Source: Macrostomum lignano (taxonomy: Eukaryota). From it: a stretch of DNA of 64,000 nucleotides. The stretch covers positions 529,136-593,135 of the forward strand of contig NIVC01000163.1 in NCBI GenBank assembly GCA_002269645.1, read 5' to 3'. Positions 7,000 to 37,841 of the stretch are shown here, one piece after another. Both the position numbers and the translations under genes were made by a program. The notes below the pieces were generated by a model, which did not search any database, was not told the DNA's origin, and worked only from the letters and a program-made list of their open reading frames with translations. Every line of letters begins with the position of its first letter. Within the stretch, counting starts at the first letter, position 1.

Positions 7000-9900
7000 A
7001 GGGGGCATCGTCCGGCGGATGCAGCGAGGAGGCGGAGGATACCGCCCATTCCGCTAGCCCCTGGCGACCAAAGACTTCCATCGAAGTGATGTCGCTCAGG
7101 GGGACCCGTAGGTCTCGCCTGCAGCGCTTTTTCCTCCTCAACGGCGTTGGGGAAGAACTCAGCTCGTCACGTGTCCCTGAGGTACCGGGCCAGCAGCAGG
7201 ATGCTCTCGGGCCTATACAAATGTCGGAGAGATCCGAGTTTGGCCCAAGGTGAGTGAGCCTGGCCCTGGTGAAAACGGGCAGTGGCAGATAAAGTGCTCG
7301 GCGTTCTCACTGCCTGAGGGGCAGAAGGGGCACCGCTCCTCGGGTACTTGGCCCTGAAGGAAGCGGTGGCGAGAGAAGCAGCCATGCCCGGAGAGGGCCA
7401 TGCTAACTGAGGTCTCTGAGGTGTCTGCGGTTGAGCCTGAGGAGGGCTCTACGCAGGAGAGGAGAGGGGCAGGGGACGGCCGCACGGGATTGCCTACAAT
7501 TCCGGGTGTCGTGCCACCTGCGGAGATGCTCGGAGTCAGTCCAGCGCTTAACGCGGGAGTTGATCACCGAGGCGGGGATGGGGGCCCCTGGGCCCGGCCC
7601 CAGCAGCGCCGGCGGAGCCAGCCTTAGTCAGCAGGTCAGCGCGCTCGTTGCCGAGGAAACCGGCGTGGCCCGGGATCCATCTGAGCTCCACCTGGTTGCC
7701 TAGCGCAAGCCTGTTGAGCTGGGTGTTGCAGTCCAGGACGGACCTGGAGCTGGTGGTGCTGCGGCAGAGGGCCCGAAGGGCTGCTTGGCTGTCATAGTGA
7801 AAAATAAATTTCCGACCGCTGAGCTGCCTTCGGCGCAGCTCTGCCGCGCAGGAGCTGATGGCAAGCACCTCGCTCTGAAAAACACTGGAGTTGAGTCCAG
7901 TGTGCTGGGAGTAGCTCCACACAACTTCTCCATTGAAGAAGACGCAAGCTCCGAAGCCAGAAAGACCATGCCTCATAGAGCCGTCAGTGTAACAGTGGAC
8001 TTCAGAATCGCTCCCGCTGTCTCTCGTGTGGAGGCTGAATAGTGACCTTATACCTCTGGCTCAGGATCTAGTCCGTGAGGATGTTGAGCCCACCACACTC
8101 CTCGAGAGCCTTAAGGCAAAGATCGGAGTGCGGGATAAGCGACCGCTTCTTAAAGACCCGCACTTTCTTGAAGGCCACCCCAGCATCTAGAAGACGCCGG
8201 GTGCTCTTCGCCGCCTCTCCTTTGATATAAATACCCGGAGGGGCACAGAGGAAGGCATTCATGCCTTCAAAAGGAGTAGAGGGTGGAGCGCCCATAGTCA
8301 TGCGGCAGGCTCTGCCCTGGATTTTGTAGAGAGCGTCGAGGTTGCTTATGACGCTCAGACGGCTGGCCCGCACGAGGCTGTCGTAACTGATCGAGGGGCG
8401 TAAGAATGGCAGTGTAAATCCACCCCAGCTTCCTGGGGGTGAGCCTCCAGGTGGTGCCCACGGCGTGTCTGACCTGAGCCAGGACAGTAAGAGCTTTTTT
8501 AGCTTTAGTTTGAAGTTGCGGAGTCCAGTTAAGCCTGTGGTCCAGAGTGAGGCCCAGGCAGCCGACCTGCTTCTCCATAGAAATGTCCTTTCCATAGAGG
8601 GTGAGCGGCTTAATGGTCCAGAGCAGTTTGTTGGTAGACATGACCGCTGTGGTTTTCTACTCTGAGAGCCTGAGGCCACATTGGTTTGCCCAACGCTCCG
8701 CTCGTCCCAGAAAGCCCTGCAGGAGATCTCTTGATGGTGTCGACTGAGGGGTCCGCGCTTATTGCGGTCACATCATCGGCATAGCCCGCCTTGAGAATAG
8801 GGTCATGGAGATCACTGCATAGCAACTCATCCATGCCCATGTTCTAGAGAAGGGGGGTGAGAACTCCGCCCTGGGGCCCCCTTTCTGAACAGGCGCCGTA
8901 AGAGAGCTGCCGTTCAGGTGGGCCACGACAGTGCGGTTCTGGATCATGAACATGATCCACAGGACAAGGTGAAGGTGGGTGGCCCTGGATTCCAGGGCTC
9001 TGCAAAAGGCCTCGAAGATGACGTTGGCGAAAGCCCCCTCAATGTTCAGGAAAAGCGAGAGGGCAAAGCCGTTGCCAAGAACGGCCCTCTCCAGGAAGTC
9101 GACGATGACATGAAGGTCCACTGAAGGTCCATGCAAGTCCACTCTCAGTAGACCTGCCCGCGCGGAAGGCGTGCTGGTTCTGAGAGTGGGAAGCGCTTCA
9201 GCTCGACCGAGAGCAGGCGCCAAAGCACCAAACTTTCGAGTAGCTTAAGGCAGAAGGAAGTGAGGCTGATAGGCCTGAAGGCCTTCACCGATTGGAAGTC
9301 GCTCTTCCCAGGCTTGGGGATAAAGACCACCCGGGCCCGAACTGGCGGGACGCGGTGTAGTCAATGAGGTTGTCTATCGCGTCGCAGACCACTTGAGCAT
9401 CGCCCGGGAAGTAAGCGGATGCTGCCAGCACAGGTTTATTGGGAAGGAGGTTATTGATTTGAACAACACAGATGTCCCCGGTCGAGAGATCAGGTCTCAT
9501 ACATGCCTTAAAAGCATTTGCAGCAAAGATCAGAGATCTTGGGCGAGGCTGGGAGTCCGCCATGCAAAAGCAGTGATTAGCCAGATGGTACGTTATTTGG
9601 CTTACCTTTAGTCAACCAGGGCTCCTGCACGAAGACTAGGCCCGAGAGCTGTCGCACGCATCAGGTTGACGCGTCACGCAGTGCTGGATGTTGATCTGCA
9701 GACACCAGGTTGACGCTGGCATCACTGCACCTCGGCGCTCACCAGCTTCGGGTCGGGGTCACCGGTGTCCATGGGCTCTTCAGCAAAAGGCCCCGATCGG
9801 TAGGAAGGCAATAGGCAGCGTTCGCCGCCCTTCGCCCATCAGCTACGGGGGCCTTGGAGCAGCCAGCCACCTGGGCAGGCGGGTCCGTCTCAAGTCGGCC

Positions 9901-14849: not shown

Positions 14850-17016
14850 ATGGATACTTCTCTCCCAACTAAGAAGGTAGCTCGTATATCTGTTAACATG
14901 TTTGCATTTTTATTTATTTGCTAGATTTTTATGCAATGTTGTTTTCAACCATAGGATCTTTCCAAGCTGAGCCCAGAGCAGAGACAGGAGCTGCTGGATC
15001 CACTGCTGCAGAGCAGTTGGAAACTGGTTGATGGTCGCGATGCCATCTTCAAGAGTTACAAGTTCAAGGATTTTCAGCAGGTATGCATGCTATTTCCCTA
15101 AGGGTGATTTTCTTAAGGGTAGGCCTACAGCTTACTGTGACTCTCAAATGCAAAATACAACCATTGTAAAGCAACATCTTATGCATGACTGAGATTGTGC
15201 TATTGTGAATGGGTGAGATTTGACTTGCTGAATACTATTGTGGGTGAGATTTGACTTGCTGAATACTATTGTGGGTGAGATTTGACTTGCTGAATTCTAT
15301 TGTGGGTGAGATCTGACTTGCTGAATACTATTGTGGGTGAGATTTGACTTGCTGAATACTATTGTGGGTGAGATCTGACTTGCTGAATTCTATTGTGGGT
15401 GAGATTTGACTTGCTGAATTCTATTGTGGGTGAGATTTGACTTGCTGAATTCTATTGTGGGTGAGATTTTGACTTGCTGAATTCTATTGTGGGTGAGATT
15501 TGACTTGCTGAATTCTATTGTGGGTGAGATCTGACTTGCTGAATTCTATTGTGGGTGAGATTTTGACTTGCTGAATTCTATTGTGGGTGAGATTTTGACT
15601 TGCTGAATTCTATTGTGGGTGAGATTTTGACTTGCTGAATACTATTGTGGGTGAGATTTGACTTGCTGAATACTATTGTGGGTGAGATTTTGACTTGCTG
15701 AATTCTATTGTGGGTGAGATTTTGACTTGCTGAATACTATTGTGGGTGAGATTTGACTTGCTGAATACTGTTGTGGGTGAGATTTGACTTGCTGAATACT
15801 GTTGTGGGTGAGATTTGACTTGCTGAATACTATTGTGGGTGAGATTTTGACTTGCTGAATTCTATTGTGGGTGAGATTTGACTTGCTGAATACTATTGTG
15901 GGTGAGATTTTGACTTGCTGAATTCTATTGTGGGTGAGATTTGACTTGCTGAATTATATTGTGGGTGAGATTTGACTTGCTGAGTTCTATTGTGGGTGAG
16001 ATTTGACTTGCTGAATTCTATTGTGGGTGAGATTTGACTTGCTGAATTCTATTGTGGGTGAGATTTGACTTGCTGAATTCTATTGTGGTGGATGAGATTT
16101 GACTTGCTGAATTCTATTGTGGAGGATGAGATTTGACTTGCTGAATTCTATTGTGGGGGAGATTTTGACTTGCTGAATTCTATTGTGGTGGATGAGATTT
16201 GACTTGCTGAGTTCTATTGTGGAGGATGAGATTTGACTTGCTGAATTCTATTGTGGGTGAGATTTTGACTTGCTGAATTCTATTGTGGTGGATGAGATTT
16301 GACTTGCTGAGTTCTATTGTGGAGGATGAGATTTGACTTGCTGAATTCTATTGTGGGGGAGATTTTGACTTGCTGAATTCTATTGTGGTGGATGAGATTT
16401 GACTTGCTGAGTTCTATTGTGGAGGATGAGATTTGACTTGCTGAATTCTATTGTGGGTGAGATTTTGACTTGCTGAATTCTATTGTGGGTGAGATTTTGA
16501 CTTGCTGAATTCTATTGTGGGTGAGATTTGACTTGCTGAATACTATTGTGGATGAGATGTGACTTGCTGAATTCTATTGTGGGTGAGATGTGACTTGCTG
16601 AATTCTATTGTGGGTGAGATGTGACTTGCTGAATTCTATTGTGGGTGAGATGTGACTTGCTGAATTCTATTGTGGGTGAGATGTGACTTGCTGAATTCTA
16701 TTGTGGGTGAGATGTGACTTGCTGAATTCTATTGTGGGTGAGATTTGACTTGCTGAATTCTATTGTGGGTGAGATGTGACTTGCAGTCAATCGCAGAGCC
16801 CCGAAATCAATTAATATCTTCTCCCAATTCCAGGCATTTTCCTTCATGACCAACTCGGCCCTGAACGCTGAGAAGCTGGACCACCACCCGGAGTGGTTCA
16901 ACGTCTACAATCGAGTTGACGTCACGCTGACCACGCACTCCTGCGGTGGCATATCCAGTCGGGACGTCCGTCTGGCCAGCGTAATGGACGCGGCGGCGGC
17001 CAAGTATTTTGCCTAA
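14850..17016 (+). CDS. PCBD: Pterin-4-alpha-carbinolamine dehydratase (PCD/DCoH)
   Basis: Exons 14850-14876, 14955-15080 and 16834-17016, all phase 0. Protein [77 protein letters not shown] carries the hallmark HHPEWFNVY. Confidence 0.95.
15215..16785. repeat. 31-bp minisatellite filling a PCBD intron
   Basis: Unit ATTGTGGGTGAGATTTGACTTGCTGAATACT. Confidence 0.97.
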
Positions 17017-17320: not shown

Positions 17321-19288
17321 GGATCCCATGCTGATCCCAGATCCCATGCTGATCCCAGATCACATGCTGATCCCAGATCCCATGCTGATCTCAGATCCCA
17401 TGCTGATCTCAGATCCCATGCTGATCCCAGATCCCATGCTGGTTCCAGATCCCATGCTGGTTCCAGATCCCATGCTGGTTCCAGATCCCATGCTGGTTCC
17501 AGATCCCATGCTGGTTCCAGATCCCATGCTGGTTCCAGATCCCATGCTGGTTCCAGATCCCATGCTGGTCCCAGATCCCATGCTGATCCCAGATCCCATG
17601 CTGATCTCAGATCCCATGCTGACCCCAGATCCCATGCTGACCCCAGATCCCATGCTGACCCCAGATCCCATGCTGATCCCAGATCCCATGCTGATCCCAG
17701 ATCCCATGCTGATCTCAGATCCCATGCTGGTTCCAGATCCCATGCTGGTTCCAGATCCCATGCTGGTTCCAGATCCCATGCTGGTTCCAGATCCCATGCT
17801 GGTTCCAGATCCCATGCTGGTTCCAGATCCCATGCTGGTTCCAGATCCCATGCTGGTTCCAGATCCCATGCTGGTTCCAGATCCCATGCTGATCTCAGAT
17901 CTCAGATCCCATGCTGACCCCAGATCCCATGCTGACCCCAGATCCCATGCTGACCCCAGATCCCATGCTGATCCCAGATCCATGCTGATCCCAGATCCCA
18001 TGCTGATCTCAGATCCCATGCTGATCCCAGATCCCATGCTGGTTCCAGATCCCATGCTGGTTCCAGATCCCATGCTGGTCGCAGATCCCATGCTGATCTC
18101 AGATCCCATGCTGATCTCAGATCCCATGCTGATCCCAGATCCCATGCTGATCCCAGATCCCATGCTGATCCCAGATCCATGCTGATCTCAGATCCCATGC
18201 TGATCTCAGATCCCATGCTGATCTCAGATCCCATGCTGATCCCAGATCCCATGCTGATCTCAGATCCCATGCTGACCCCAGATCCCATGCTGACCCCAGA
18301 TCCCATGCTGACCCCAGATCCCATGCTGATCCCAGATCCCATGCTGATCCCAGATCCCATGCTGATCTCAGATCCCATGCTGGTTCCAGATCCCATGCTG
18401 GTTCCAGATCCCATGCTGGTTCCAGATCCCATGCTGGTTCCAGATCCCATGCTGGTTCCAGATCCCATGCTGGTTCCAGATCCCATGCTGGTTCCAGATC
18501 CCATGCTGGTTCCAGATCCCATGCTGATCTCAGATCTCAGATCCCATGCTGACCCCAGATCCCATGCTGACCCCAGATCCCATACTGACCCCAGATCCCA
18601 TGCTGATCCCAGATCCCATGCTGATCCCAGATCCCATGCTGATCTCAGATCCCATGCTGATCCCAGATCCCATGCTGGTTCCAGATCCCATGCTGGTTCC
18701 AGATCCCATGCTGGTCCCAGATCCCATGCTGATCTCAGATCCCATGCTGATTTCAGATCCCATGCTGATCCCAGATCCCATGCTGACCCCAGATCCCATG
18801 CTGATCCCAGATCCCATGCTGATCTCAGATCCCATGCTGATCTCAGATCCCATGCTGATCTCAGATCCCATGCTGATCCCAGATCCCATGCTGATCCCAG
18901 ATCCCATGCTGATCCCAGATCCCATGCTGATCCCAGATCCCATGCTGGTTCCAGATCCCATGCTGGTTCCAGATCCCATGCTGGTTCCAGATCCCATGCT
19001 GGTTCCAGATCCCATGCTGGTCCCAGATCCCATGCTGATCCAGATCCCATGCTGATCTCAGATCCCATGCTGACCCCAGATCCCATGCTGACCCAGATCC
19101 CATGCTGATCCCAGATCCCATGCTGATCCCAGATCCCATGCTGATCTCAGATCCCATGCTGGTTCCAGATCCCATGCTGATCCCCATGCTGACCCCAGAT
19201 CCCATGCTGACCCCAGATCCCATGCTGACCCCATGCTGATCCCAGATCCCATGCTGACCCCAGATCCCATGCTGATCCCATGCTGATC
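17321..19288. repeat. 18-bp minisatellite (GATCCCATGCTGATCCCA)
   Basis: Visible; the source of the DPRSHA/MLIPDP ORFs. Confidence 0.97.
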
Positions 19289-19585: not shown

Positions 19586-19685
19586 GAGCCCTTTGCAAAT
19601 CAGTGCGCCTGTCGACCCACAGTCAGCCTTCTGTTAGGCTTAACCCTAACCCACCCCTAATCAGTTGGCAAAAGCATATGCACCA

Positions 19686-21870
19686 CCTGCAGTAGCTTTG
19701 GCGCCCCCTGCAGTAGCTTTGGCGCCCCCTGCAGTAGCTTTGGCGCCACCTGCAGTAGCTTTGGCGCCCCCTGCAGTAGCTTTGGCGCCCCCTGCAGTAG
19801 CTTTGGCGCCCCCTGCAGTAGCTTTGGCGCCCCCTGCAGTAGCTTTGGCGCCCCCTGCAGTAGCTTTGGCGCCCCCTGAAGTAGCTTTGGCGCCCCCTGC
19901 AGTAGCTTTGGCGCCCCCTGCAGTAGCTTTGGCGCCACCTGCAGTAGCTTTGGCGCCCCCTGCAGTAGCTTTTGCACCCCCTGCAGTAGCTTTGGCACCC
20001 CCTGCAGTAGCTTTGGCACCCCCTGCAGTAGCTTTTGCACCCCCTGCAGTAGCTTTGGCACCCCCTGCAGTAGCTTTGGCACCCCTGCAGTAGCTTTGGC
20101 GCCCCTGCAGTAGCTTTGGCGCCACCTGCAGTAGCTTTGGCACCACCTGCAGTAGCTTTGGCGCCCCCTGCAGTAGCTTTGGCACCCCCTGCAGTAGCTT
20201 TGGCACCCCCTGCAGTAGCTTTGGCGCCACCTGCAGTAGCTTTGGCGCCACCTGCAGTAGCTTTGGCACCACCTGCAGTAGCTTTGGCGCCCCCTGCAGT
20301 AGCTTTGGCGCCACCTGCAGTAGCTTTGGCACCCCCTGCAGTAGCTTTGGCACCCCCTGCAGTATTTGGCGCCTTTGGCACCCCCTGCAGTATTTGGCGC
20401 CTTTGGCACCCCCTGCAGTATTTGGCGCCTTTGGCACCCCCTGCAGTAGCTTTTGCACCCCCTGCAGTAGCTTTGGCACCCCCTGCAGTAGCTTTGGCAC
20501 CCCCTGCAGTAGCTTTGGCGCCCCCTGCAGTAGCTTTGGCGCCACCTGCAGTAGCTTTGGCACCACCTGCAGTAGCTTTGGCGCCCCCTGCAGTAGCTTT
20601 GGCACCCCCTGCAGTAGCTTTGGCACCCCCTGCAGTAGCTTTAGCGCCACCTGCAGTAGCTTTGGCACCCCCTGCAGTAGCTTTGGCGCCACCTGCAGTA
20701 GCTTTGGCGCCACCTGCAGTAGCTTTGGCACCACCTGCAGTAGCTTTGGCGCCCCCTGCAGTAGCTTTGGCGCCACCTGCAGTAGCTTTGGCACCCCCTG
20801 CAGTAGCTTTGGCACCCCCTGCAGTATTTGGCGCCTTTGGCACCCCCTGCAGTATTTGGCGCCTTTGGCACCCCCTGCAGTAGCTTTTGCACCCCCTGCA
20901 GTAGCTTTGGCACCCCCTGCAGTAGCTTTGGCACCCCCTGCAGTAGCTTTGGCGCCCCTGCAGTAGCTTTGGCGCCACCTGCAGTAGCTTTGGCACCACC
21001 TGCAGTAGCTTTGGCGCCCCCTGCAGTAGCTTTGGCACCCCCTGCAGTAGCTTTGGCACCACCTGCAGTAGCTTTGGCGCCCCCTGCAGTAGCTTTGGCG
21101 CCACCTGCAGTAGCTTTGGCACCCCCTGCAGTAGCATTGGCACCGCTGCAGTATTTGGCGCCTTTGGCACCCCTGCAGTATTTGGCGCCTTTGGCACCCC
21201 CTGCAGTATTTGGCGCCTTTGGCACCCCCTGCAGTATTTGGCGCCTTTGGCACCCCTTGCAGTAGCTTTGGCGCCCCTGCAGTATTTGGCGCCTTTGGCA
21301 CCCCCTGCAGTATTTGGCGCCTTTGGCACCCCCTGCAGTATTTGGCGCCTTTGGCACCCCCTGCAGTAGCTTTGGCGCCCCCTGCAGTATTTGGCGCCTT
21401 TGGCACCCCCTGCAGTATTTGGCGCCTTTGGCACCCCCTGCAGTAGCTTTGGCGCCCCCTGCAGTATTTGGCGCCTTTGGCACCCCCTGCAGTATTTGGC
21501 GCCTTTGGCACCCCCTGCAGTATTTGGCGCCTTTGGCACCCCTGCAGTATTTGGCGCCTTTGGCACCCCTGCAGTATTTGACGCCTTTGGCACCCCCTGC
21601 AGTATTTGGCGCCTTTGGCACCCCCTGCAGTATTTGGCGCCTTTGGCACCCCCTGCAGTATTTGGCGCCTTTGGCACCCCTGCAGTAGCTTTGGCGCCCC
21701 CTGCAGTAGCTTTGGCGCCCCCTGCAGTAGCTTTGGCGCCACCTACAGTAGCTTTGGCGCCACCTACAGTAGCTTTGGCGCCACCTGCAGTAGCTTTGGC
21801 ACCACCTGCAGTAGCTTTGGCGCCCCTGCAGTAGCTTTGGCGCCACCTGCAGTAGCTTTGGCACCCCCTT
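19686..21870. repeat. 21-bp minisatellite (CTGCAGTAGCTTTGGCGCCCC) interleaved with a 28-29 bp variant
   Basis: Visible; variant unit CTGCAGTATTTGGCGCCTTTGGCACCCC. Confidence 0.97.
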
Positions 21871-21874
21871 GCAG

Positions 21875-22030
21875 TCCGCCGATCAGGACGAAAATCGACG
21901 ACTTTAACAAGCAGAGCGACGAGTTCGGCGATTTGGTGGTGACAAATTTTAAAGATCATTACCACAATCCGACTTATAAGAACCTGCATGGGATTCGATG
22001 GGCATTGGAACACTGCTCGGGAGTTCCGTT
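21875..22030 (+). pseudogene. Isolated exon-like fragment of a GT31 beta-1,3-galactosyltransferase
   Basis: Reads QSDEFGDLVVTNFKDHYHNPTYKNLHGIRWALEHCSGVPFVL, matching GT31 ESxxYGDIxxxxFxDxYxNLTxK...xW...C. Bounded by TTGCAG and GTAATG. No partner exons seen in the window. Confidence 0.7.
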
Positions 22031-22088
22031 TGTGCTCAGTGTAATGATTCTGCTTAGCCTGCTTTTTGATCTAACTCTTCCGCCTCAT

Positions 22089-22427
<339 letters not shown>

Positions 22428-22773
22428 GGATAGGTTGTATGTTACAATGCAGAGCTTCTGTCACGTGCTAGTCAATAATTTTCCGCAGTTGCAGAAGTCT
22501 CCAGTTTCAAGTTTTATAATATTTCAGTCCATTTTACAACACCACAAGAAGGCACTTGCTAGTTTTGTTTAGTTTTCTCACGACCGAAATCTTCCAGACA
22601 GACACTGATCTGCTTTCCAGTTTCCGCATAGACGGCTCAGAATTTTGAACTGAATTCCGGACGAACAGAAACTTATAAAAGTCGACTCGCGAATCAATGA
22701 AGGGGCATTTGTGTTTTACTGCGTCATTTCTTTTTAGTCGTTTGATTGAAGATCTGCCAGTGCCACTGCAGAC

Positions 22774-24510
<1,737 letters not shown>

Positions 24511-24791
24511 AATTTTAAATCGAGTACATCTACGAGTATTTACGATGCAAAAACAACTTCTACTCGAAATATTATACGGTCGTACATTAAGTGTAAAATG
24601 GAGTCATTTGCATGAAGTCTGCTTAGGAATAAGTAACAATAGTACGTACATGTACTTGGTTTCTCGTCTAAAATCAAATTCAATCTAAGTTGCACCTTCT
24701 ATAAATATACAGCAACATGTTGAAGTAGGTATCTGTTTTGAGAATTGTTTGTTAAGACAGAATTTACTGTTTGTTACAATTGGGACACACG

Positions 24792-26090
24792 GAGAGAGAG
24801 GGAGCGGAGAGGAGGCAGTGGAGGGGAGGGAGCGGAGAGGAGGCAGCGGAGAGGAGGGAGCGGAGGGGAGGGAGCGGAGGGGAGGGAGCGGAGAGGAGGG
24901 AGCGGAGGGGAGGGAGCGGAGAGGAGGGAGCGGAGAGGAGGCAGCGGAGGGGAGGGAGCGGAGGGGAGGGAGCGGAGGGGAGGGAGCGGAGGGAGGGAGC
25001 GGAGAGGAGGGAGCGAGAGGAGGGCAGCGGAGAAGAGGGCAGCGGAGGGGAGGGAGCGGAGAGGAGGCAGCGGAGGGGAGGGAGCGGAGAGGAGGGAGCG
25101 GAGGGGAGGCAGCGGAGGGGAGGGAGCGGAGAGGAGGCAGCGGAGGGGAGGGAGCGGAGAGGAGGGAGCGGAGAGGAGGGAGCGGAGGGGAGGGAGTGGA
25201 GGGGAGGGAGCGGAGAGGAGGCAGCGGAGAGGAGGGAGCGGAGGGGAGGGAGCGGAGAGGAGGCAGCGGAGGGGAGGGAGCGGAGGGGAGGGAGCGGAGA
25301 GGAGGCAGCGGAGAGGAGGCAGCGGAGGGGAGGGAGCGGAGGGGAGGGAGCGGAGAGGAGGGAGCGGAGAAGAGGGCAGCGGAGGGGAGCGGAGAGGAGG
25401 GAGCGGAGAGGAGGGAGCGGAGGGGGCAGCGGAGGGGAGGCAGCGGAGGGGAAGGAGCGGAGAGGAGGCAGTGGAGGGGAGGGAGCGGAGAGGAGGGAGC
25501 GGAGAAGAGGGCAGCGGAGAGGAGGCAGCGGAGGGGAGGGAGCGGAGGGGAGGCAGCGGAGGGGAAGGAGCGGGGAGGAGGCAGCGGAGAGGAGGCAGCG
25601 GAGGGGAGGGAGCGAGAAGAGGGCAGCGGAGAAGAGGGCAGCGGAGAGGAGGCAGCGGAGGGGAGGGAGCGGAGGGGAGGCAGCGGAGGGGAGGCAGCGG
25701 AGGGGAGGGAGTGGAGAGGAGGCAGCGGAGAGGAGGGAGCGGAGGGGAGGGAGCGGAGAGGAGGGAGCGGAGAAGAGGGCAGCGGAGAGGAGGCAGCGGA
25801 GGGGAGGGAGCGGAGGGGAGGCAGCGGAGGGGAAGGAGCGGAGAGGAGGCAGCGGAGAGGAGAGGAAGGAGCAGAGGGGAGGGAGCGGAGAGGAGGGAGC
25901 GGAGAAGAGGGCAGCGGAGAGGAGGCAGCGGAGGGGAGGGAGCGGAGGGGAGGCAGCGGAGGGGAGGGAGCGGAGAGGAGGCAGCGGAGAGGAGGGAGCG
26001 GAGGGGAGGGAGCGGAGAGGAGGGAGCGGAGGGGAGGGAGCGGAGGGGAGGCAGTGGAGAGGAGGGAGCGGAGAGGAAGGAGCGAGAGGG
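24792..26090. repeat. Purine-rich 14-bp minisatellite (AGCGGAGAGGAGGC/G)
   Basis: Visible; explains four overlapping low-complexity ORFs. Confidence 0.95.
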
Positions 26091-26330
26091 AAACCAGGAA
26101 ACCAGAAGAGAAGTGCAATAGTTTATCTCACGTCACTGAATGAACGAAGTCAAGGTGCAAATTAAACCAAAACATTGCCAAAACAAAACCATTGAATTAT
26201 TATATTTGGTTCGGGAAGCTGAGGATCAAATACTTCAAACTAATTATAATAGAACAGTTGAGTCAGACTTCTGGAGCATTAAGAAAGTTTATTTTGTGAG
26301 CTCAAAGTAAAGGTACCTGATTGATGACAT

Positions 26331-28039
26331 CTGTCTTGTGAAGCTGACACCTGCCTGTAAGACATGACACCCAGACTCTAGAAATGGTATCCAGCCTCAT
26401 GTACTAAAAATAACACTCAGATACTAAAATTGGCACCCAGTTACACAAAAGGCACCTAGATACTAAAAATGGCACCCAATTTCTAAAAATGGCACCCAAT
26501 TGATAAAAATGGTACCCAATTGCTAAAATGGCACCCAATTGCTAAAAATGGCACCCAATTGCTAAAAATGGCACCCAATTGCTAAAATGGCACCCAATTG
26601 CTAAAAATGGCACCCAATTTCTAAAAATAGCACCCAATTGCTAAAAATGGCACTCAATTGCTAAAATGGCACCCAATTGTTAAAAATGGCACCCAATTTC
26701 TAAAAATGGCACCCAATTGCTAAAAATGGCACCCAATTGCGAAAAATGGCACCCAGATACTAAAAATGGCACCCAGATACTCAAAATGGCACCCAGATAC
26801 TTCAAATGGCACCCAGATACTTCAAATGACACCCAATTGCTAAAAATGGCACCCAGATATTTCAAATGGCACCCAGATACTTCAAATGGCACCCAGATAC
26901 TAAAAATGACACCCAATTGCTAAAAATGGCACCCAGATATTTCAAATGGCACCCAGATACTTCAAATGGCACCCAGATACTAAAAATGACACCCAATTGC
27001 TAAAAATGGCACCCAGATATTTCAAATGGCACCCAGATACTAAAAATGACGCAATTGCTCAAAACGGCACCCTTAACCGACACGCAATGCCACCAGCAAT
27101 TAGTAAAGAGTTGCTCAGCGCATGCTCTACAATAGAATCTCCAGCTCCACAGGATACACAGGATACACCAGCTCCACAAGACTTCTGTCTTGTGAAGCTG
27201 ACACCTGCCTGTAAGACATGACACCCAGACTCTAGAAATGGTATCCAGTCTCATGTACTAAAAATAACACTCAGATACTAAAATTGGCACCCAGTTACAC
27301 AAAAGGCACCTAGATACTAAAAATGGCACCCAATTGATAAAAATGGTACCCAATTGCTAAAATGGCACCCAATTGCTAAAAATGGCACCCAATTGCTAAA
27401 AATGGCACCCAATTGCTAAAATGGCACCCAATTGCTAAAAATGGCACCCAATTTCTAAAAATAGCACCCAATTGCTAAAAATGGCACCCAATTGCTAAAA
27501 ATGGCACCCAATTTCTAAAAATAGCACCCAATTGCTAAAAATGGCACCCAATTGCTAAAAATGGCACCCAATTGCTAAAAATGGCACCCAGATACTCAAA
27601 TACTCAAAATGGCACCCAGATACTAAAAATGGCACCCAGATACTCAAAATGGCACCCAGATGCTAAAAATGACACGCAATTGCTAAAAATGGCACCCAAT
27701 TGCTAAAAATGGCACCCAGATACTTCAAATGGCACCCAGATACTTCAAATGGCACCCAGATACTTCAAATGGCACCCAGATACTTCAAATGACACCCAAT
27801 TGCTAAAAATGGCACCCAGATATTTCAAATGGCACCCAGATACTTCAAATGGCACCCAGATACTAAAAATGACACCCAATTGCTAAAAATGGCACCCAGA
27901 TATTTCAAATGGCACCCAGATACTAAAAATGACGCAATTGCTCAAAACGGCACCCTTAACCGACACGCAATGCCACCAGCAATTAGTAAAGAGTTGCTCA
28001 GCGCATGCTTTACAATAGAATCTCCAGCTCCACAGGATA
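26331..28039. repeat. Tandem duplication (about 850-880 bp), each copy holding a 19-20 bp AAAATGGCACCCAATTGCT array and the DNase 3' end
   Basis: TCTGTCTTGTGAAGCTGACACC starts at 26331 and 27184; both copies end in CTCCAGCTCCACAGGATA (27156 and 28039). Confidence 0.92.
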
Positions 28040-29990
28040 ATGATCGCTAATTTGAGCAGCTTGATCTGTGCTCAAACCGAACTCCGTATCGAAGCGGAAC
28101 ACCCTGGCACCGGGCATGAGTTGGTAGGCCGAGTGCGTGACGATCAGCCGGTCGTAGGCGCAGTCCGTCGACTTCACAGTCGTGTCCACGCCGTCGCCGA
28201 TCAGCCAGAGAAAGTCGGGATCGAGCCGCAGCGGCAGGGCGGCCATCTCGCCGCGGTTCACGTAGCGACAGTCGGCGTTCAGGTCGCCGGCAATCAGGAG
28301 GTTCTCGCGACGTCTGGGACGCAGCATGTCGTGCAGGGCGTTGAGCTCTTCAACCGAGGCGTCTGGCTCGGTGTGCAGACAAATCACCGTGAGTACAGTG
28401 GTCGAGGATGAGCACCGACCGGCCGGTCTCAACGCCAGTCGAACTTCGTACGGTTCGCGCTGGAATCGGTCGCCGGAATCTGCCACTGTCCGTTCGGACA
28501 GAACTTCGGCCACGGATTCTCGGTAGAGAACGGCGTATTGCTCTTTGCTCACCTGGCGTGATTGAGGGTGGCGTTAATTTGATAATAGCAAGTCTTTGTA
28601 GCTACCTGTCTGTCTTTCTAGCTACCTGTCTGTGATCTCGAGTCTTTGTAGATACCTGTGATCAAGTATTTGTAGCTACTGGTCTGTGATTAAGTCTTTG
28701 CAGCTGCCTGTCTGTGATCGAGTCTTTGTAGCCACCTCTTTGTGATAAAGTTTTTTTAGCTACTGGTCTGTGATCAAGTCTTTGTAGCTACTGGTCTGTA
28801 ATTAAGTCTTTGTAGCTACTGGTCTGTGATCAAGTCTTTGTAGCTTCTGGTCTGAATTAAGTCTTTGTAGCTACTGGTCTGTGATCAAGTCTTTGTAGCT
28901 ACTGGTCTGTAATTAAGTCTTTGTAGCTACTGGTCTGTGATCAAGTCTTTGTAGCTTCTGGTCTGAATTAAGTCTTTGTAGCTACTGGTCTGTGATCAAG
29001 TCTTTGTATCTGCCTGTTTGTGATCAAGTCTTTGTATCTGCCTGTCTGTGAACAAGTCTTTGTAGCTACTGGTCCGTGATCAAGTCTTTGTATCTGCCAG
29101 TATGTGATCTAAGTCTTTGTAGCTACTGGTCTGTGATCAAGTCTTTATAGCCACCTGTCTGTGATCAAGACTTTGTAGTTATATCTGTTACTAGTCTTTG
29201 TACATGTAGCTACAGCTGATGCATATTCGAATAATAACTATTCAATCTCTCCAGCTAAATCTGACAATCCATGAAAGCAGTTTCTCTCACCGTGCGGCCC
29301 GTTCTGACGCTGATGACGTAGCTGAACGGGTCTCTTCGCTCATCCCGATTCGCCCGTTCAACCAGCTTTCTAAAAGCTTCGCCACTGAAAAAAGCAGAAA
29401 AAAATTAACGTGCGAGCGTGCGTAACTTTGGTCGCAATCAACGCCTCTAGACACGGGACTCCAGTCCAGTTTAGCCGCCAAGGACCACCTTGCTTCAGAT
29501 GCGAGAATTCAAAGAACGGGACGAGCAGCAGCTCAGCTAAGCAGCCACACGACCCCGACATTTTTCAAGCTACGTGAGAAATTTTAAAATTCAAATCTTC
29601 GTTCTTCTACTTTTCTCAGTAGTCTAAATTGAATCCGTCACACATTTTTCATCGAAATTTGGACTTCAACTAAAATTGTTTTGTTTTATGCCTTCTTAAC
29701 CCGGGCCCCCGGTAATATTGTAACTAGTATCTGAATAACAGAAACCTCTTATCGCGAATCTCCATGACAACCAAAATATCGTAGCGATTCAGAATCCTAG
29801 CCAGATTGTTCATCACGAATGCGTCGCGCGCTTTCTTCCGGCCGAATATCTGGATGTTGAACGATCCGAAACGAATCGGCTGCCGCCTACTACTGGAATG
29901 CCTGGAAGCAGTGGCTGTTCCGGGAATGCAGTCGAGACTGACGGCAGCTGACAGCGCGAAGATCGCTAGGATCAGAGTTGCGGGCTTCAT
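28010..29990 (-). CDS. DNASE1: Secreted deoxyribonuclease I-like protein, about 293 aa
   Basis: Exons 29990-29746, 29384-29291 and 28552-28010 join in phase. Signal peptide MKPATLILAIFALSAAVS. Motifs SFNIQIFG, MEIRD, KEQY, LHTEP, GDLNADC, CAYDR and SDHYPVE retain all DNase I catalytic residues. Confidence 0.95.
28600..29180. repeat. 28-bp minisatellite in a DNase intron
   Basis: Unit GTCTTTGTAGCTACTGGTCTGTGATCAA. Confidence 0.92.
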
Positions 29991-30129
29991 CTGAGACCGA
30001 CACGATTGGAGACTGTTGGGGTCGAGTGAGAGGAACTCTGTCAGTATCTGCATGCGCGTGAGTGTCAGACTAGGGTCATCGGCTGCGTCAGATTATTTTA
30101 TGTCAGAACAGAGTCAGAATAGCGTCATG

Positions 30130-30470
30130 TCTGTGTCAGAATTTGGTCATATCTGTGTCAGAATGGGGTCAGATCTGTGTCAGAATGGGGTCAGATCTGT
30201 GTCAGAATGGGGTCAGATCTGTGTCAGAATGGGGTCAGATCTGTGTCAGAATAGGGTCAGATCTGTGTCAGAATGGGGTCAGATCTGTGTCAGAATAGGG
30301 TCACATTTGTGTCAGACCAGGGTCATCTCTGTGTCAGAACAGGGTCATAACTGTGTCAGACCAGGGTCATCTCTGTGTCAGAACAGGGTCATAACTGTGT
30401 CAGACCAGGGTCATCTCTGTGTCAGAACAGGGTCATATCTGTGTCAGACCAGGGTCATATCTGTGTCAGA
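30130..30470. repeat. 22-bp minisatellite (GATCTGTGTCAGAATGGGGTCA)
   Basis: Visible; probably lies in a 5'UTR intron of the DNase gene. Confidence 0.92.
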
Positions 30471-31137
30471 CTGTTCTTCGAAACCTGTCAAAGGTTGTTT
30501 TACATGACAACATTCTTACAGTTAGAGAGTAAGACCCTTAGTACAGGGCCGCAATCGAAGACAGAGAACAATCCCACAAAAGTCAACTCACCAGAAAGCA
30601 GAGTTGCTTGAAGTTTCTTGCGGTTTAGTAGCAGCAAAAAAAGTAGCCAAGCAATTTATATGCACAGGCACCCTCCAATCAGTAATGCTTGATCACGGCC
30701 CAGTGACTGAATGAGATTCTGATACCAAGCATCGCACTGCTCCACCGCCATTCGAACCGCTACGACACGACTCGTTGTTAGCAGCACAATTTCCTATTTT
30801 ATTCAACAGGAAGTCAGCCATTTATTTGCTCATCAAAATTGGCTGATTTTTATCCTGTCCAAAAGTTAACAGGCTTTCGTCACGACACGCGCGCGCGGGA
30901 CTCGGGGAAATGAAATGTGCTTGAAAAACTGCACGCAAGCTAAAAGTACACGCGCACACGAGTAGTAATCAACTTCAAAAACTTTCTACAGGAATTCGGC
31001 TATGAGTGTGCCAAAATTCTGCTTGCTTGCATTCACGGGCCTGACTGAGGAAATCAAGATAGTCCCATAAATGTGTGGAGAGTTATTAATTTTAACTATG
31101 GAAAACCTACGTTCTTTTAGCTGCATGGTTGGTTCCC

Positions 31138-31657
31138 TCTCTCTCCCCCTCTCCGCTGTCTCCCTCTTCCTCTCTGCTGTCTCCCTCCCCCTCTCTGTTG
31201 TATCCCTTTCCCTCTCTGCTGTCTCCCTCTCCCTCTCTGCTGTCTCCCTCTCCCTCTCTGCTGTATCCCTTTCCCTCTCTGCTGTCTCCCTCCCCCTCTC
31301 TGCTGTATCCCTTTCCCTCTCTGCTGTCTCCCTCCCCCTCTCTGCTGTATCCCTTTCCCTCTCTGCTGTCTCCCTCTCCCTCTCTGCTGTATCCCTTTCC
31401 CTCTCTGCTGTCTCCCTCCCCCTCTCTGCTGTATCCCTTTCCCTCTCTGCTGTCTCCCTCTCCCTCTCTGCTGTCTCCCTCTCCCTCTCTGCTGTATCCC
31501 TTTCCCTCTCTGCTGTCTCCCTCTCCCTCTCTGCTGTCTCCCTCCCCCTCTCTGCTGTCTCCCTCTCCCTCTCTGCTGTCTCCCTTTCCCTCTCTGCTGT
31601 CTCCCTCCCCCTCTCTGCTGTCTTCATCTCCCTCTCTGCTGTCTCCCTCTCCCTCTC
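31138..31657. repeat. 21-bp pyrimidine-rich minisatellite (CTCTCTGCTGTCTCCCTCTCC)
   Basis: Visible. Confidence 0.95.
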
Positions 31658-32058
31658 AAGCTTCGGAAAACGCAAAGTCCAGTCTAGGCAACCTACAAGG
31701 GAATTCTAATTAAAAATAGTTATAACCACTTGTTCCAGTGCGTGGGCTGCAAGAGTCTTATCAGTCGGAAAGCTCTGCAGCCGACCAGGTGCTCAAGGTG
31801 CATTTGAGTCACATTTGGTACTCCGGGCACACACGGAAATCGGCAACACCTTATTCGGAAGGCCAAGCACAGGAAACAGAAATAGAAGCATTCGCAGGAA
31901 AAAAGTGGAAAGAGATGTGAAAGCGGTGGCCCCCGCAGAGGTCCATGTCAAGGTGATTTCTGATACTATAAATACGGCAGCCCTGCAGGAGGCCCATGGC
32001 AATAACAAATTTTTTTCAGTATTCTCTGAAAAAATCTGCTGTCCAGTCAAGTAACAGA

Positions 32059-33383
32059 ATGCTCTGCAGCGAAAATCTTCTGCTGCTTGCGCTCGTGAGC
32101 AGCTGCTGCTGCCTTCAGTCCCTGTCTGCCAGGCGCTTCGGCCCTCAGCCCGCATCCTTCAGAGCGCTGAGTCGCCCAGCTCAGTCCGGAGTATCCAGCG
32201 CGCTCCGCAGTCAGCTGGGGCAGCTGGCTTCGCCCCTGCCTGGCGGAGTGGTCTGCCCGACGTGTCTGCTGGTGGCACCGCAAGCCAGCAGTCGGCTGGT
32301 TCAGGGCTCGGTGGCCCGGCAGGAGTTGCAGCAGGCGATCAGGTCTCGCGGACTGCCTCAGGAGGTGGCGAACCGCCTGGCTGCCCTGGCCTTCGCTCGC
32401 TCCGTCTCCTTCCACACGTTCTCTTTCACCGTGAGCGCCCTGGTCGGCCGCGGCCACTACGAGACCTTCGTCGGGGCTGGCCGGCGCCTCGACGATGTCA
32501 GCGTGGAGTTCGGCATCGTGCACAGCGTCGCCACCGCCCAGCTGGTTGCCAAGACAACGCCTGTGCCGATGCGAAGCTGCAAGCGCCGGTGGTTGATCAG
32601 ACGGTGCCGCTCCTGGACGCAGCAGGTGCCGCGGGGCCTCACGGCCGAGGAGCTGCGGCAGGTGGAGGCTGGACTGAGGCACTTCGCCATCGCTGCCGCG
32701 GCAAGTCGGGTGGCCGCCAGCTCCGGCATGCTGCGCAGCCGCCGATCCGCCGAGGAGGTCGCCAGCGATGCCCCGAGGCACCGGAGGTGGTGGAAGAACT
32801 GCAGCTGGGGGTTTCGACGACCGCAGGCCCAACGGCTGCAACCTCGGAGGACGGCGGCAACGCCACGCTGGTGGAGCTGGTCAGAACCGGATTCGACCGC
32901 CTGGCCATTTCCGCTACCAGCCAGACTCTGCGCCGCATCCCAGTCTCCATGGCAACCGCCTTCGCCTCCGTGTTCACCCGCTCGCTCGGGCTGCCGAAGT
33001 CTCTCGCCGGGCCTCTCAGAGTCGCCGTGATCGAAGCCGCCGTGACAGCGACAGCTGACGGCGCACTGAGGCAGATCAGCGCGCTGTTCAACAGCGAGGA
33101 CGACCCCGCCGCCATCCGCTTCATCCAGCTGGGCCTCGTTCGGCGACAGAGCAGCTTCGACTTGACCTCGGCGACTGTCCGACTGGAGGCCCGGTTCGCC
33201 GACAGACTGCAGCTGCTGGTCAGTCAGGAAGGCGACGACGAAGTCATTCGAATCCGACGGCTGCCTGCTCAGGTGAGTCACCACGACGTTCGACAGGCGC
33301 TGCGGCTGCTGCGGGCCGCCGCTGAGGGCCGCCTTTCCGGGAAACTGCTGCCGGCGGAGACTGCGCTTCTAGGAAAGAAATGA
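32059..33383 (+). CDS. Unknown intronless secreted protein (about 441 aa after fixing one frameshift) with two related domains separated by RSRR
   Basis: ATG at 32059 with signal peptide MLCSENLLLLALVSSCCCLQSLSA. ORFs 31996-33030 and 32262-33383 join if one C is added to CCCC at 32771-32774. GC-rich non-repetitive coding-like sequence, with TATAAAT at 31967. Confidence 0.75.
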
Positions 33384-33729
33384 ATCTGCGCTAACCGCCT
33401 GCATAAAACTGATCAAACTGCCTTATCCTGCCGAACTTACATTAATTGATCCTTACTATACTCTCGTGAGCACGATAAATTGAATTAGTCTAAACAAGAT
33501 TGTGACACGAATTATCAGGCCTAAAATATGATTTACGATATCTATAACTGTCCGACCATTCCTTTGTCCTTTAACATTCCTTTGGACAATATTTAAGATT
33601 CGTGTATTGTGTTAAAAGTTTTCTCGATCTGGCGTTTTATTTTCTATAATGCTAGTTTCATTTCAGATTAATGCAGATTAAGCTTAGGCTATCTTAAATA
33701 GATATACATTTGTAGTTATTAAACTTCTT

Positions 33730-34160
33730 TAACTGACGGATCACTCAATGGACAAGAATTTTCTTAAACGGTGAGGTCACTCCGTGGACAAGAACCTTCT
33801 TTAATAGTGAGGTCACTCCGTGAACAAGAACTTCCTTTAACGATCAGGTCACTCCGTGGACAAGAACTTCCTTTAACGGTGAGGTCACTCCGTGGACAAG
33901 AACTTTCTTTAATAGTGAGGTCACTCCGTGGACAAGAACTTTCTTTAACGGTGAGGTCACTCCGTGGACAAGAACTTTCTTAACGGTGAGGTCACTCAGT
34001 GGACAAGAACTTCCTTTAACGGTGAGGTCACTCCGTGGACAAGAACTTCCTTTAACGATCAGGTCACTCCGTGGACAAGAACTTTCTTAACGGTGAGGTC
34101 ACTCCGTGGACAAGAACTTCCTTTAACGGTGAGGTCACTCCGTGGACAAGAACTTCCTTC
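33730..34160. repeat. 36-bp minisatellite (AACGGTGAGGTCACTCCGTGGACAAGAACTTCCTTT)
   Basis: Visible, about 11 copies. Confidence 0.92.
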
Positions 34161-36037: not shown

Positions 36038-37841
36038 CTAAGCGGTAGCCTGGGTGTAGCTGCCGCCGGCACCGCGAGCTTGCTGCTGCTGCTGCTGCTG
36101 ATAATACTGCTGGCCGCGCGGGGCAGCACCTCGATGCCAATTACCGTTGCTACCACCGGCTTTGCCGGCGCCATTTCCGCCACCATTATTAATGCCCTCA
36201 CTATTGTTAATATGCCCGGCGTCGCCTGCGGCGTTAGGAGCCAGCTGCTGTTGCTGCTGCTGACCGTTAGCGCTGCCGCCTGTGCTCGAGCGCATTCCGC
36301 CGTTGTTGCGGCCGCCGCGACCGCCGCCGCGCATCTGACCAGACGGCTGCTGCGCCCCGATTGGAGGATTGTAACCAGCCAGTCCGCCGCCAACACGACC
36401 GCTTAGGCGGTTGTTGCGGCCGCCCTGCTGTTGCTGCTGCTGCGGCGGCAGAGGCGGCGGTGGCGGCACCTGCTGCTGGTGGTGCTGTGGCGGCGGGCCA
36501 GTCGTGTAAGCATGCGGATGATGATGAGGTGGTGGCGGATGAGACATCGGAGGCTGCGGCTGCGGCGGCAGTGGTGGCGGCGGCATGTGATGTGGATGAT
36601 GATGCGCCGGACCGTAACCGCCGGGGCCGTAGTGATGCGGAGGCATGTGCGGATGAGGCGCCATCGGGTTGTTGTAGAAGTTGGCCAGCTCGTTCGGGTC
36701 GGGCGTCATGGCCTCCTTTACCTGGGGATGGAGTTGCAATTTTTACAATGCATTTGTAAGTCAGTCAGTGAGTCAGTTAGTGAGTCAGTCAGTCAGTGAG
36801 CCAAGCAGTGGGTCAGTCAGTCAGTCAGTCAGTCAAGTGGGTCAGTCAGTCAGTGAGTAAGGCAGTGAGTCAGTCAGTCAGTTAGTCAAGTGGGTCAGTC
36901 AGTCAGTGAGTAAGGCAGTGGGTCAGTCAGTCAGTCAAGTGGGTCAGTCAGTCAGTGAGTAAGGCAGTGAGTCAGTCAGTCAGTTAGTCAAGTGGGTCAG
37001 TCAGTCAGTGAGTAAGGCAGTGGGTCAGTCAGTCAGTCAAGTGGGTCAGTCAGTCAGTGAGTAAGGCAGTGGGTCAGTCAGTGAGTCAGGCAGTGGGTCA
37101 GTCAGTGAGTCAGGCAGTGGGTCAGTCAGTGAGTCAGGCAGTGGGTCAGTCAGTCAGTGAGTCAGCCAGCGGACTGGTCACCTTAGCCAATGCGTGCCCA
37201 ATTCGATAATAGGCCTCGGGGGGATCGGCCAGGCAGTCAATCTGCAGGTGCAAGGTCTGCTTCAAATGCTGATACTTGGCCTCGCCAGTCTCCAGACACT
37301 CCTGCTCTTTGCGATCGTTCCGCATTGAACCGGCGCCTAGAATGGACATCTTGACGTTGCTCTCCTCCTGTAGTTTTCTCAGACTAGCTCCGCCTTGGCC
37401 TAACAATTTGCCAACAAAATTAAATCCAGGAAATTGGTCCTGCGGTATGAGCACTTTGCTGCGAATCTTGCAACGGCGATTGTTTAACAGGTCGACCATT
37501 TCCGTGACGCCCCAGCGCAGTCGGTGGATTTCTAATTCAAGCAATCGGCGAGCGTTCGGCAACGCGTCTCCGTTTAGTTCGGCCAGTTCAGCCTCCAGCA
37601 CGGCGATCTCTTCCATTCGAGCGCGTTCGCGAGCAGTCAACTGACGATCGTTGCCGCTGTTATAATTGTTGGCGTACTGCTTCTGCTGCTGGCCAGCCGT
37701 GCTATTGTTAGCGCCAGGCATTGTTGGAGAGGCCTGTTGTTGATTCTCATCTTGTTTGCCTGGCGATACCTGCTGCTGCTGCTGCTCAGATGGCTGGTCA
37801 GAATCGCTCAACTGCTTGGCGGCATTGTCCTCAGTAGACAT
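36038..37841 (-). CDS. KHDRBS: STAR/GSG KH-domain RNA-binding protein, KHDRBS (Sam68/SLM)-like, about 447 aa
   Basis: Exons 37841-37182 and 36721-36038 (phase 0). QUA1 region LEAELAEL..ARRLLELEIHRL; KH region KVLIPQDQFPGFNFVGKLLGQGG..LQEESNVKMSILGAGSMR..KYQHL..LHLQI..PPEAYYRIGHAL; P/H/Q/RGG-rich tail. Confidence 0.9.
36760..37165. repeat. (CAGT)n-derived array filling the KHDRBS intron
   Basis: Visible. Confidence 0.92.

Follow-up and report, generated by a model that had tools for sequence, protein, structure and literature searches.

Proteins of the ALF/LALF type are small secreted alpha/beta proteins with a conspicuous Cys-closed, cationic amphipathic beta-hairpin rich in Arg/Lys and aromatic residues, in which the disulfide loop spans ~20 residues. 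Those of the BPI/LBP (TULIP) type are secreted proteins of ~450 amino acids (aa) with two homologous alpha/beta lobes, in each of which an antiparallel sheet is combined with one short and one long helix; their N-terminal lobe is cationic. Precursors of the defensin/cathelicidin type combine a signal peptide with a cationic Cys-stabilised module beside an anionic segment, with RxRR at the boundary. Features of all three are found in the product of a gene of the flatworm Macrostomum lignano at positions 32059..33383 of the forward (+) strand of a 64,000-nucleotide (nt) stretch of contig NIVC01000163.1 (assembly GCA_002269645.1, positions 529,136 to 593,135), here called the window. This is a real, transcribed gene. 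Its family is undescribed and unusually distributed, the predicted fold has no match among solved structures, and the protein is already deposited as a hypothetical protein. We lean towards the reading that it encodes a secretory precursor that is cut by a proprotein convertase and whose cationic N-terminal domain (domain A) binds surfaces, as a defence or surface-binding effector; that at least five copies of the gene are present; and that the frameshift in the window copy is likely an assembly error.

The likeness to ALF- and BPI-like binders and to precursors with anionic pro-pieces is one of design, not of descent. The hairpin loop of domain A is C-x8-C, unlike the longer ALF loop, and it is accompanied by a second domain (domain B) and a candidate convertase site. 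Searches of PDB sequences and folds gave no match to ALF, and the likeness is confined to the principle of a cationic hairpin closed by a clamp. Unlike the lobes of BPI/LBP, the two halves are joined by a 40-residue acidic disordered linker with RSRR. Pfam LBP_BPI_CETP was not matched, and no BPI, CETP, or Takeout structure was among the top 50 Foldseek matches in the PDB. In contrast to defensin/cathelicidin-type precursors, the cationic module is a folded domain of ~200 aa that lies N-terminal to the acidic part, and there is no homology.

Layout of the predicted precursor

The precursor, as read from the sequence, has ~441 aa and consists of a signal peptide, domain A, RSRR, an acidic disordered linker, and domain B. 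The initial annotation had proposed this layout, and all of its motifs were found where it had placed them. The start codon and the putative signal peptide MLCSENLLLLALVSSCCCLQSLSA (aa 1-24; 32059..32130, +) show, on inspection, a hydrophobic core and, behind it, a cleavage motif of small residues, and hydrophobic leaders comparable to it were read at the N-termini of relatives. Domain A (aa 43-221; 32185..32721, +) was delimited by HMMER matches, the profile envelope, the family alignment A1, and an AlphaFold2 model. Within this domain, sequence and alignment identify the motif CPTC (aa 66-69; 32254..32265, +). Its cysteines are either both present or both absent across the family, and their spacing is C-x2-C in Macrostomum-type sequences and C-x4 to C-x10 in some relatives rich in guanine and cytosine (GC). 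The motif probably forms a small disulfide loop rather than a redox site.

Domain A further contains a Cys-clamped beta-hairpin, CKRRWLIRRC (aa 174-183; 32578..32607, +), with a hydrophobic W-L tip and five flanking Arg/Lys residues, which sits at the beta5-beta6 turn of the AlphaFold2 domain A model. The first cysteine is invariant in A1 and the second is conserved in at least 90% of its sequences. The hydrophobic tip recurs in the family (for example CHRILFVKKCH and CHHCWLVARCCH) as L-F, W-L, or W-V, and it is flanked by Arg/Lys in many members, including the window protein. The CxxC and the hairpin had both been described as specific to domain A. This was borne out. The hairpin cysteines are invariant or nearly so family-wide, and domain B of the window protein contains no cysteines. 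A third conserved element, PRGLTAEE (32629..32652, +), contributes invariant R, G, and E residues (R150, G151, and E156 in A1), which the model places at the start of the C-terminal helix. The window residues C174, C183, R192, G193, and E198 thus all fall on invariant or near-invariant columns of A1. No pattern hinting at a catalytic site was apparent.

The candidate proprotein-convertase site RSRR (aa 226-229; 32734..32745, +) fits the consensus R-X-K/R-R, and a cut would be expected before S230, that is, between RSRR and SAEE at 32745/32746. RSRR is kept in all four sister copies described below. It lies at the end of a long helix before the linker, where the AlphaFold2 confidence (predicted local distance difference test, pLDDT), averaged over 10-residue blocks, falls from 88 to 78 and then to 46. 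The sequence therefore has the features of a furin/kexin substrate, with R-X-K/R-R in a predicted exposed segment of a protein with a putative signal peptide. The linker (32746..32861, +) has a net charge of -9 and is predicted to be disordered, with pLDDT of 33-46 over residues ~251-290 of the intact sister protein P0001. An N-A-T sequon marks the border between linker and domain B in the sequence (32859..32867, +). Domain B itself (32862..33347, +) was delimited by its own profile and the AlphaFold2 model; its sequence contains the motifs RSLGLPKSLAGPL (32979-33017, +) and QVSHHDVRQALRLLR (33270-33314, +) and, between them, a shortened acidic hairpin, QEGDDEV (33225-33245, +).

Charge is distributed unevenly along the chain. 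Mature domain A would have a net charge of +20, an isoelectric point (pI) of 11.9, and two Cys pairs. In two M. lignano paralogues with domain A only, P0054 and P0004, this domain reaches +33 and +35, respectively. In P0054 it is followed by RSRR and QAETAVESEKFDLDFQDD (RSRR/QAE), and in P0004 by RIRR and SVVEDEALPETVDLLE (RIRR/SVV), with a net charge of -6 in both tails. This Macrostomum subclade has thus conserved a convertase-type RxRR with an anionic segment behind it.

Relatedness of domains A and B

Domains A and B are probably ancient duplicates that predate the flatworm gene. The initial annotation had suggested homology of the two halves from shared motifs, and this is probably correct although the relationship is invisible to BLASTP (half A against half B, E 68). 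In a target set of 12 sequences, the domain A profile, built from 43 sequences, picked up B domains in relatives with E values as low as 1.3e-6, and the B profile picked up A domains with E values as low as 1.5e-4. When the A profile (43 sequences) was compared with the B profile (12 sequences) by hhalign, 122 columns aligned colinearly with a probability of 67%, E 5e-5, and a score of 34.9. The alignment paired RSRGLPQEVANRL with RSLGLPKSLAGPL and PRGLTAEELRQVEAGLR with PAQVSHHDVRQALRLL, which are the motif pairs originally noticed. Controls scored lower: reversed profiles reached 14 and 20 column shuffles 8.5-19.4. The score remained 33.2 after removal of all M. lignano sequences.

The full-length protein was modelled with AlphaFold2 (pLDDT 76.9; predicted template modelling score, pTM, 0.70). 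In this model, both halves follow the same order of beta, alpha, alpha, beta-meander, and alpha, with ~40 disordered residues between them. In domain B, a strand at 291-307 is followed by helices at 308-321 and 326-342, three strands (pLDDT 80-95), a low-confidence stretch, and a helix at 421-439. The profile-profile match, which lies well above its controls, and the agreement of the predicted topologies speak for an old duplication.

Family membership and distribution

Relatives were collected by an exhaustive phmmer/HMMER search of 1.84 billion cluster representatives (E < 1e-3). It yielded 45 sequences, most of which align to domain A, with distant members at phmmer E 4e-24 to 1e-3; in word-indexed searches, either M. 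lignano proteins alone or just a few sequences came up. The family profile, which spans the whole domain of ~175 aa, matched P0001 at E 9.4e-49 and the window-encoded P0002 at E 2.1e-48. The B profile (~180 aa) matched residues 272-449 of P0001 at E 2.6e-40 and found 12 domain copies in seven relatives (P0005, P0008, P0010, P0013, P0014, P0018, and P0024). An A domain is followed by one or two B domains in P0005, P0008, P0010, P0013, P0014, and P0024, and the order is B-A-B in P0018. The other B domains have a conserved cysteine (C-K/R-Y-V) and an SKS..GG hairpin, both of which are lost in M. lignano B, where the acidic QEGDDEV takes the place of the hairpin. P0010 ends, by reading, in a hydrophobic anchor-like segment.

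Several members are fused to further modules: a bulb-type lectin domain (B_lectin) lies at the C-terminus of P0022, P0027, P0030, and P0033, DUF5648 is present in P0025, and the M. lignano paralogue P0016 has the order WSC-WSC-A. The hydrophobic leaders and the lectin-type fusions suggest that the family is extracellular and has repeatedly been coupled to glycan-binding modules. The statement that the protein belongs to no named family was upheld. Pfam gave no A or B match in either half, in 20 homologues, or in any of the 35 members of A1, and searches of PDB sequences with phmmer and hmmsearch gave nothing below E 0.15. The A/B family deserves a domain model of its own.

An early impression that both halves resemble small uncharacterised proteins of protists was likewise supported by the exhaustive search. 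Among the 26 matches whose source was looked up, some are M. lignano proteins and the remainder come from environmental or run-level assemblies in ENA, JGI, or Logan that are eukaryote-like or giant-virus-like. P0009 (L006 1-8056, L007 1-7130) and P0015 (a 6079-nt JGI/NCBI contig) are encoded on gene-dense, seemingly intronless contigs with Ser/Thr kinases; the P0015 contig also carries an HNH endonuclease, and those of P0009 have 25.6% GC. These contigs fit giant viruses or compact AT-rich protists. Scans of IMG/VR with P0009 and with alignment A3 gave no match.

Predicted fold of domain A

Modelled alone, domain A reached a pLDDT of 94.7 and a pTM of 0.85. The elements follow the order helix, beta1, alpha, alpha, five-strand beta-meander, and long C-terminal helix, so that six long antiparallel strands (12-16 residues) are combined with two short helices and the long C-terminal helix. 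Foldseek found no match in the PDB at E <= 1e-3 for either the whole model or domain A alone. Double-hotdog, MHC-I, and Bet v 1-like matches were rejected because of template modelling (TM) scores of at most 0.34. As its model is confident and has no PDB neighbour, domain A would be worth solving experimentally.

Significant fold matches were obtained only among viral models. In BFVD, five uncharacterised Mimiviridae proteins were matched with a probability of 1.0 and E 3.7e-7 to 1.6e-4: A0A6G6ADX5 of Borely moumouvirus (E 3.7e-7, TM 0.54/0.51), A0A3G4ZYQ2 of Edafosvirus, A0A3G5A862 of Hyperionvirus, A0A3G4ZN21 of Terrestrivirus, and A0A650DA38. These giant-virus ORFans are similar to domain A in size (~190-270 aa) but share only 8-12% sequence identity with it, and the comparison is one between predicted models. 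Judged by length, they are absent from the 45 HMMER matches. Environmental protist-like sequences, giant-virus fold relatives, and a single flatworm thus make up an unusual distribution.

Gene copies, frameshift, and transcription

The interval 32059..33383 (+) is 1325 nt long, which is not a multiple of three, and hence is not a single open reading frame (ORF). The ORF 31996..33030 carries the signal peptide, domain A, and RSRR in the same frame, whereas the end of the acidic linker and domain B, up to the TGA stop codon at 33381..33383 (+), lie in another frame (ORF 32262..33383). The linker straddles the frame change. Alignment of the intact sister protein P0056 to the window by tblastn placed it in frame 1 at 32026-32811 and in frame 3 at 32772-33380. 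Alignments to two other loci located the frameshift at 32771-32774 (+), where the window has CCCC. The nearest sister locus, L005 (NIVC01003295, Mlig031296g3), has CCCCC at this junction and reads DAPEAP, and the more distant copy L001 has CTCCC (within GCTCCC). Apart from the fifth C, L005 differs from window positions 31700-33900 (2.2 kb) by only two substitutions, and the flanks are identical.

The sister proteins P0001, P0055, P0056, and P0057 of assembly Mlig_3_7 are uninterrupted at this position (DAPEAPEVVEEL) and are encoded by single, intronless ORFs of 452-454 aa. The claim of a single intronless ORF therefore holds for these four copies and fails for the window. The initial annotation had rebuilt the true protein and missed the 1-nt frameshift in the window copy. 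The window protein is 98% identical to the GenBank entry "hypothetical protein BOX15_Mlig031296g1", and the Mlig031296/Mlig014438 cluster comprises at least five near-identical gene copies in M. lignano. P0055 and P0057 (Mlig014438g1/g2) end in ...LPALPEESRRF and the other copies in ...LPAETALLGKK, which indicates a second small frame change near the stop codon; it may be real or may have arisen during assembly.

The most likely source of the loss of one C (C5 to C4) in the window is an error in long-read assembly, or else a very recent lesion that struck one of several redundant copies. Mlig_3_7 was assembled from PacBio reads by Canu and polished with Pilon; 64% of its bases were scored as error-free by REAPR, and 180 Mb lie in duplicated blocks at >= 95% identity. 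Because the change is a homopolymer contraction in a five-copy gene of such an assembly, an assembly error is the simplest reading. Either one base has to be corrected in the window copy or this copy has to be flagged as a pseudogene.

The gene cluster is transcribed, since the GenBank models of the sister copies derive from a genome-guided transcriptome built from RNA-seq, in which novel transcripts below 0.5 reads per kilobase per million (RPKM) and without overlap to an earlier de novo transcriptome were dropped (PMC5730564). The sequence TATAAATA (31967..31974, +), ~90 nt upstream of the ATG at 32059, reads as a TATA box, and paralogue P0004 (L002) has a similar sequence, CATAAATAC, ~110 nt before its ATG. 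The transcript-based models of the sister copies begin near window position 32026, and the upstream in-frame ATG at 31996 is therefore probably unused. A scan for bacterial promoters and terminators was set aside as irrelevant to eukaryotic DNA.

Between the window and L001, the coding sequence (CDS) differs by ~17 synonymous and ~7 true non-synonymous changes, with a ratio of non-synonymous to synonymous rates (dN/dS) of 0.15-0.17 and changes spread across both halves; an apparent change at codon 238 was left out of this count as an artefact of the placement of the padding base. The domain B half has eight synonymous and two non-synonymous changes, so purifying selection acts on the downstream frame as a portion of one and the same protein. 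As had been stated, the CDS is GC-rich (67.5%, compared with 46.5% for the whole window). However, neighbouring exons have 52-65% GC, so the gene lies only slightly above them and its base composition is not foreign.

Paralogues and introns

At least five paralogue groups were found in M. lignano: the A+B gene of the window (Mlig031296/Mlig014438), the A-only gene of P0054 (Mlig022805/Mlig026167), the tandem pair of P0020 (Mlig018188/026559/019930), P0038 (Mlig017382/010958), which adjoins the P0016 group, and P0016 itself (Mlig006903). P0038 and P0020 have two spliceosomal introns each and P0016 at least one, and one intron position inside domain A is common to all three. The window gene, P0054 (Mlig022805), and P0004 are intronless. 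Tandem arrays lie at L009 6001-9321 and L010 6001-12022, where a WSC-WSC-A gene stands beside an A-only gene and two A-only genes are 3.6 kb apart.

The shared intron position and the tandem arrays indicate that the family has long resided in the lineage. The intronless subclade (the window gene, Mlig022805, and P0004) may have lost its introns, may have been retroposed, or may descend from an intronless ancestor. The original suggestion of retroposition is thus plausible within this subclade and does not extend to the other paralogues, which have introns.

Proposed role of the precursor

In the reading that we modestly favour, a furin/kexin-type convertase would cut behind RSRR in the exposed linker. 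The cut would release domain A (~22 kDa, pI ~12, with two predicted disulfides) from the anionic linker and domain B; these would either mask the charge of A, in the manner of a pro-region, or act as its partner. Domain A would then bind anionic, glycan-bearing surfaces, such as microbial envelopes or membranes, through the clamped hairpin with its hydrophobic tip and basic flanks. In relatives, the fused B_lectin, WSC, and DUF5648 modules could supply the targeting. The degenerate hairpin of M. lignano B, in a domain that is nevertheless under purifying selection, suggests a regulatory, chaperone, or partner role rather than the activity of A. A defence role is the most economical guess from these features. 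If this holds, the family, which has neither a Pfam model nor a solved structure, would add a structural class to the secreted proteins that bind surfaces or serve in defence. Since M. lignano is transgenic and tractable to RNA interference, a functional study would be feasible.

A bolder version can be formulated, which we put forward tentatively and consider rather improbable. In it, A and B would form an undescribed extracellular fold family of microbial eukaryotes, giant viruses (at the level of fold), and M. lignano, consisting of glycan-targeted effectors that act on membranes or envelopes through the disulfide-clamped hairpin with its hydrophobic tip. In Macrostomum, the family would have become a convertase-activated, hyper-cationic, two-component defence protein, with B and the linker as intramolecular inhibitor.

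Several observations weigh against the favoured role. The signal peptide was judged by eye alone, and RxRR is absent from distant relatives and from the paralogues P0016, P0020, and P0038. The A domains of the family span pI 5-12 and are not uniformly basic, so that the extreme charge is a Macrostomum trait. Domain B has a net charge of +7, and the masking of charge could therefore hardly be its only function. The initial annotation had suggested a pore-former or an antimicrobial; among known structures of antimicrobial, lipid-binding, or pore-forming proteins, no match to the fold was found (best PDB TM 0.34, E 0.016). Look-ups of the gene IDs, full texts, and supplements gave no expression site, functional annotation, or experiment, and Mlig031296, Mlig014438, Mlig022805, Mlig006903, Mlig018188, and Mlig026167 were not found in a full-text search or in the supplements searched for three M. 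lignano papers (two for Mlig026167); literature searches on antimicrobial or rhabdite proteins of Macrostomum also gave nothing relevant. Finally, the frameshift may be genuine, which would make the window copy a pseudogene.

Alternative explanations

If the 1-nt deletion is real, the window copy is a true pseudogene whose product, the 334-aa P0002, is truncated after the linker and ends in a tail read out of frame, and function resides in the sister copies. The window sequence as given does carry the frameshift, and with the large duplicated blocks of M. lignano DV1 and at least five gene copies the loss of one would be cheap; domain-A-only paralogues exist, and a truncated product could even stay active. 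Homopolymer contraction is, however, a typical long-read error, here in a multi-copy region where short-read polishing is unreliable, and a copy that otherwise differs from its nearest intact relative by two substitutions, with none in the flanks, shows no sign of decay. We regard a pseudogene as possible but doubtful. That the two frames are bridged by a very short intron, or are two separate genes, with no frameshift at all, appears extremely improbable. By eye, a GT...AG pair from GTCGCC to CCCGAG can be found whose removal (~20 nt) would restore the frame, but the four sister copies run through this site with one extra base and retain the VASDAP residues that such an intron would drop. Its ~20 GC-rich nt also contrast with the 68-314-nt introns of the paralogues and with a mean M. 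lignano intron of 1.1-1.4 kb (PMC5730564), and in the two-gene version domain B would have neither a start codon nor a signal peptide of its own where they would be required. Recent horizontal transfer from a protist or a giant virus, one form of the transfer initially suggested, would explain both the lack of introns in the window gene, Mlig022805, and P0004 and the GC-rich CDS, and it would agree with the patchy distribution (M. lignano plus environmental sequences among the 26 matches looked up) and the fold relatives in Mimiviridae. It is nevertheless very unlikely, because P0016, P0038, and P0020 lie in tandem arrays and have introns, one of them at a common position in domain A. The TATA promoter shared with P0004 and a CDS composition close to that of host exons (67.5% against up to 65% GC) argue in the same direction. 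An ancient transfer into the lineage may have taken place.

With regard to function, the domains could be carriers of hydrophobic ligands resembling the helix-grip proteins (Bet v 1/START/SRPBCC), and the protein a secreted binder of lipids or small molecules and not a surface-active effector. Their order of elements (beta, alpha, alpha, five-strand beta-meander, long C-terminal alpha) is that of this fold, and the weak Foldseek matches were mostly to helix-grip families such as PYL/PYR, Bet v 1/PR-10, CoxG, and bacterial START, along with BamC. These matches (E >= 0.05, TM 0.14-0.26, root-mean-square deviation 12-17 A) reflect the order of elements and do not demonstrate a shared fold. Moreover, no profile match to START, Bet_v_1, or Polyketide_cyc was found in Pfam, and carriers of this kind do not typically have so extreme a positive charge, a conserved hairpin that is exposed, or fusions to lectins, which makes this account decidedly unlikely. 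The protein might instead be a structural or packaging polycation in material that the flatworm secretes, such as mucus, seminal fluid, rhabdite-type granules, or the product of adhesive or releasing glands, where it would condense or cross-link polyanionic glycans and have no antimicrobial role. Rhabdites stain as basic protein, and the very high pI, the multi-copy family, a convertase-type site typical of regulated-secretion cargo, and the association of the family with glycan-binding modules would suit such a function. Flatworm-specific roles cannot apply to the environmental protist-like members or the giant-virus fold relatives, however, and the gene IDs were not found in the supplementary files searched for the M. 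lignano seminal-fluid screen or for two other M. lignano transcriptome or genome papers. We consider a packaging polycation rather unlikely, and a convertase-cut, surface-binding precursor remains our preferred interpretation.

Genomic neighbourhood and annotation

On the minus strand of the window, the gene is flanked by an exon of an Exo_endo_phos gene (28010-28552), a gene for a KH/BBP-like RNA-binding protein with a Q/P-rich tail (36038-37841), and an alanyl-tRNA synthetase gene (PF01411; 47196-51512) with several exons and tandem repeats in its introns. The same order of Exo_endo_phos, KH-domain, and alanyl-tRNA synthetase genes is found on the Mlig_3_7 scaffold with sister copy L005, and L001 has a same-sized gene at the position of the KH-domain gene. 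As gene order is kept around the sister copies, these loci are duplicated blocks.

The window also overlaps UniProt entry A0A1I8FGL0 (P0003, "MACPF domain-containing protein"), which is a chimeric gene model that extends over 21876-32514 (+). It joins half of domain A to a Galactosyl_T-like piece, repeat-flanked pieces, and a stretch that runs antisense to the Exo_endo_phos gene. Neither P0003 nor the intact protein gave a Pfam MACPF match, even with the E limit raised to 10, and no MACPF or CDC structure was among the top 50 Foldseek matches in the PDB. The chimera is thus an annotation problem. In the GC-rich block at 7-11 kb, ORFs at 8068-9223 (-) looked by eye like fragments of a reverse transcriptase or retroelement, but the two that were scanned had no Pfam match at E <= 1e-3. 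The window is exceptionally rich in tandem repeats: TRF reported 71 rows, with units of 4-63 nt and arrays of up to 2.2 kb, for example at 4-1244, 15210-16784, 17322-19280, 19680-21875, 24790-26089, and 26402-27931. These repeats yield many long spurious ORFs on both strands.

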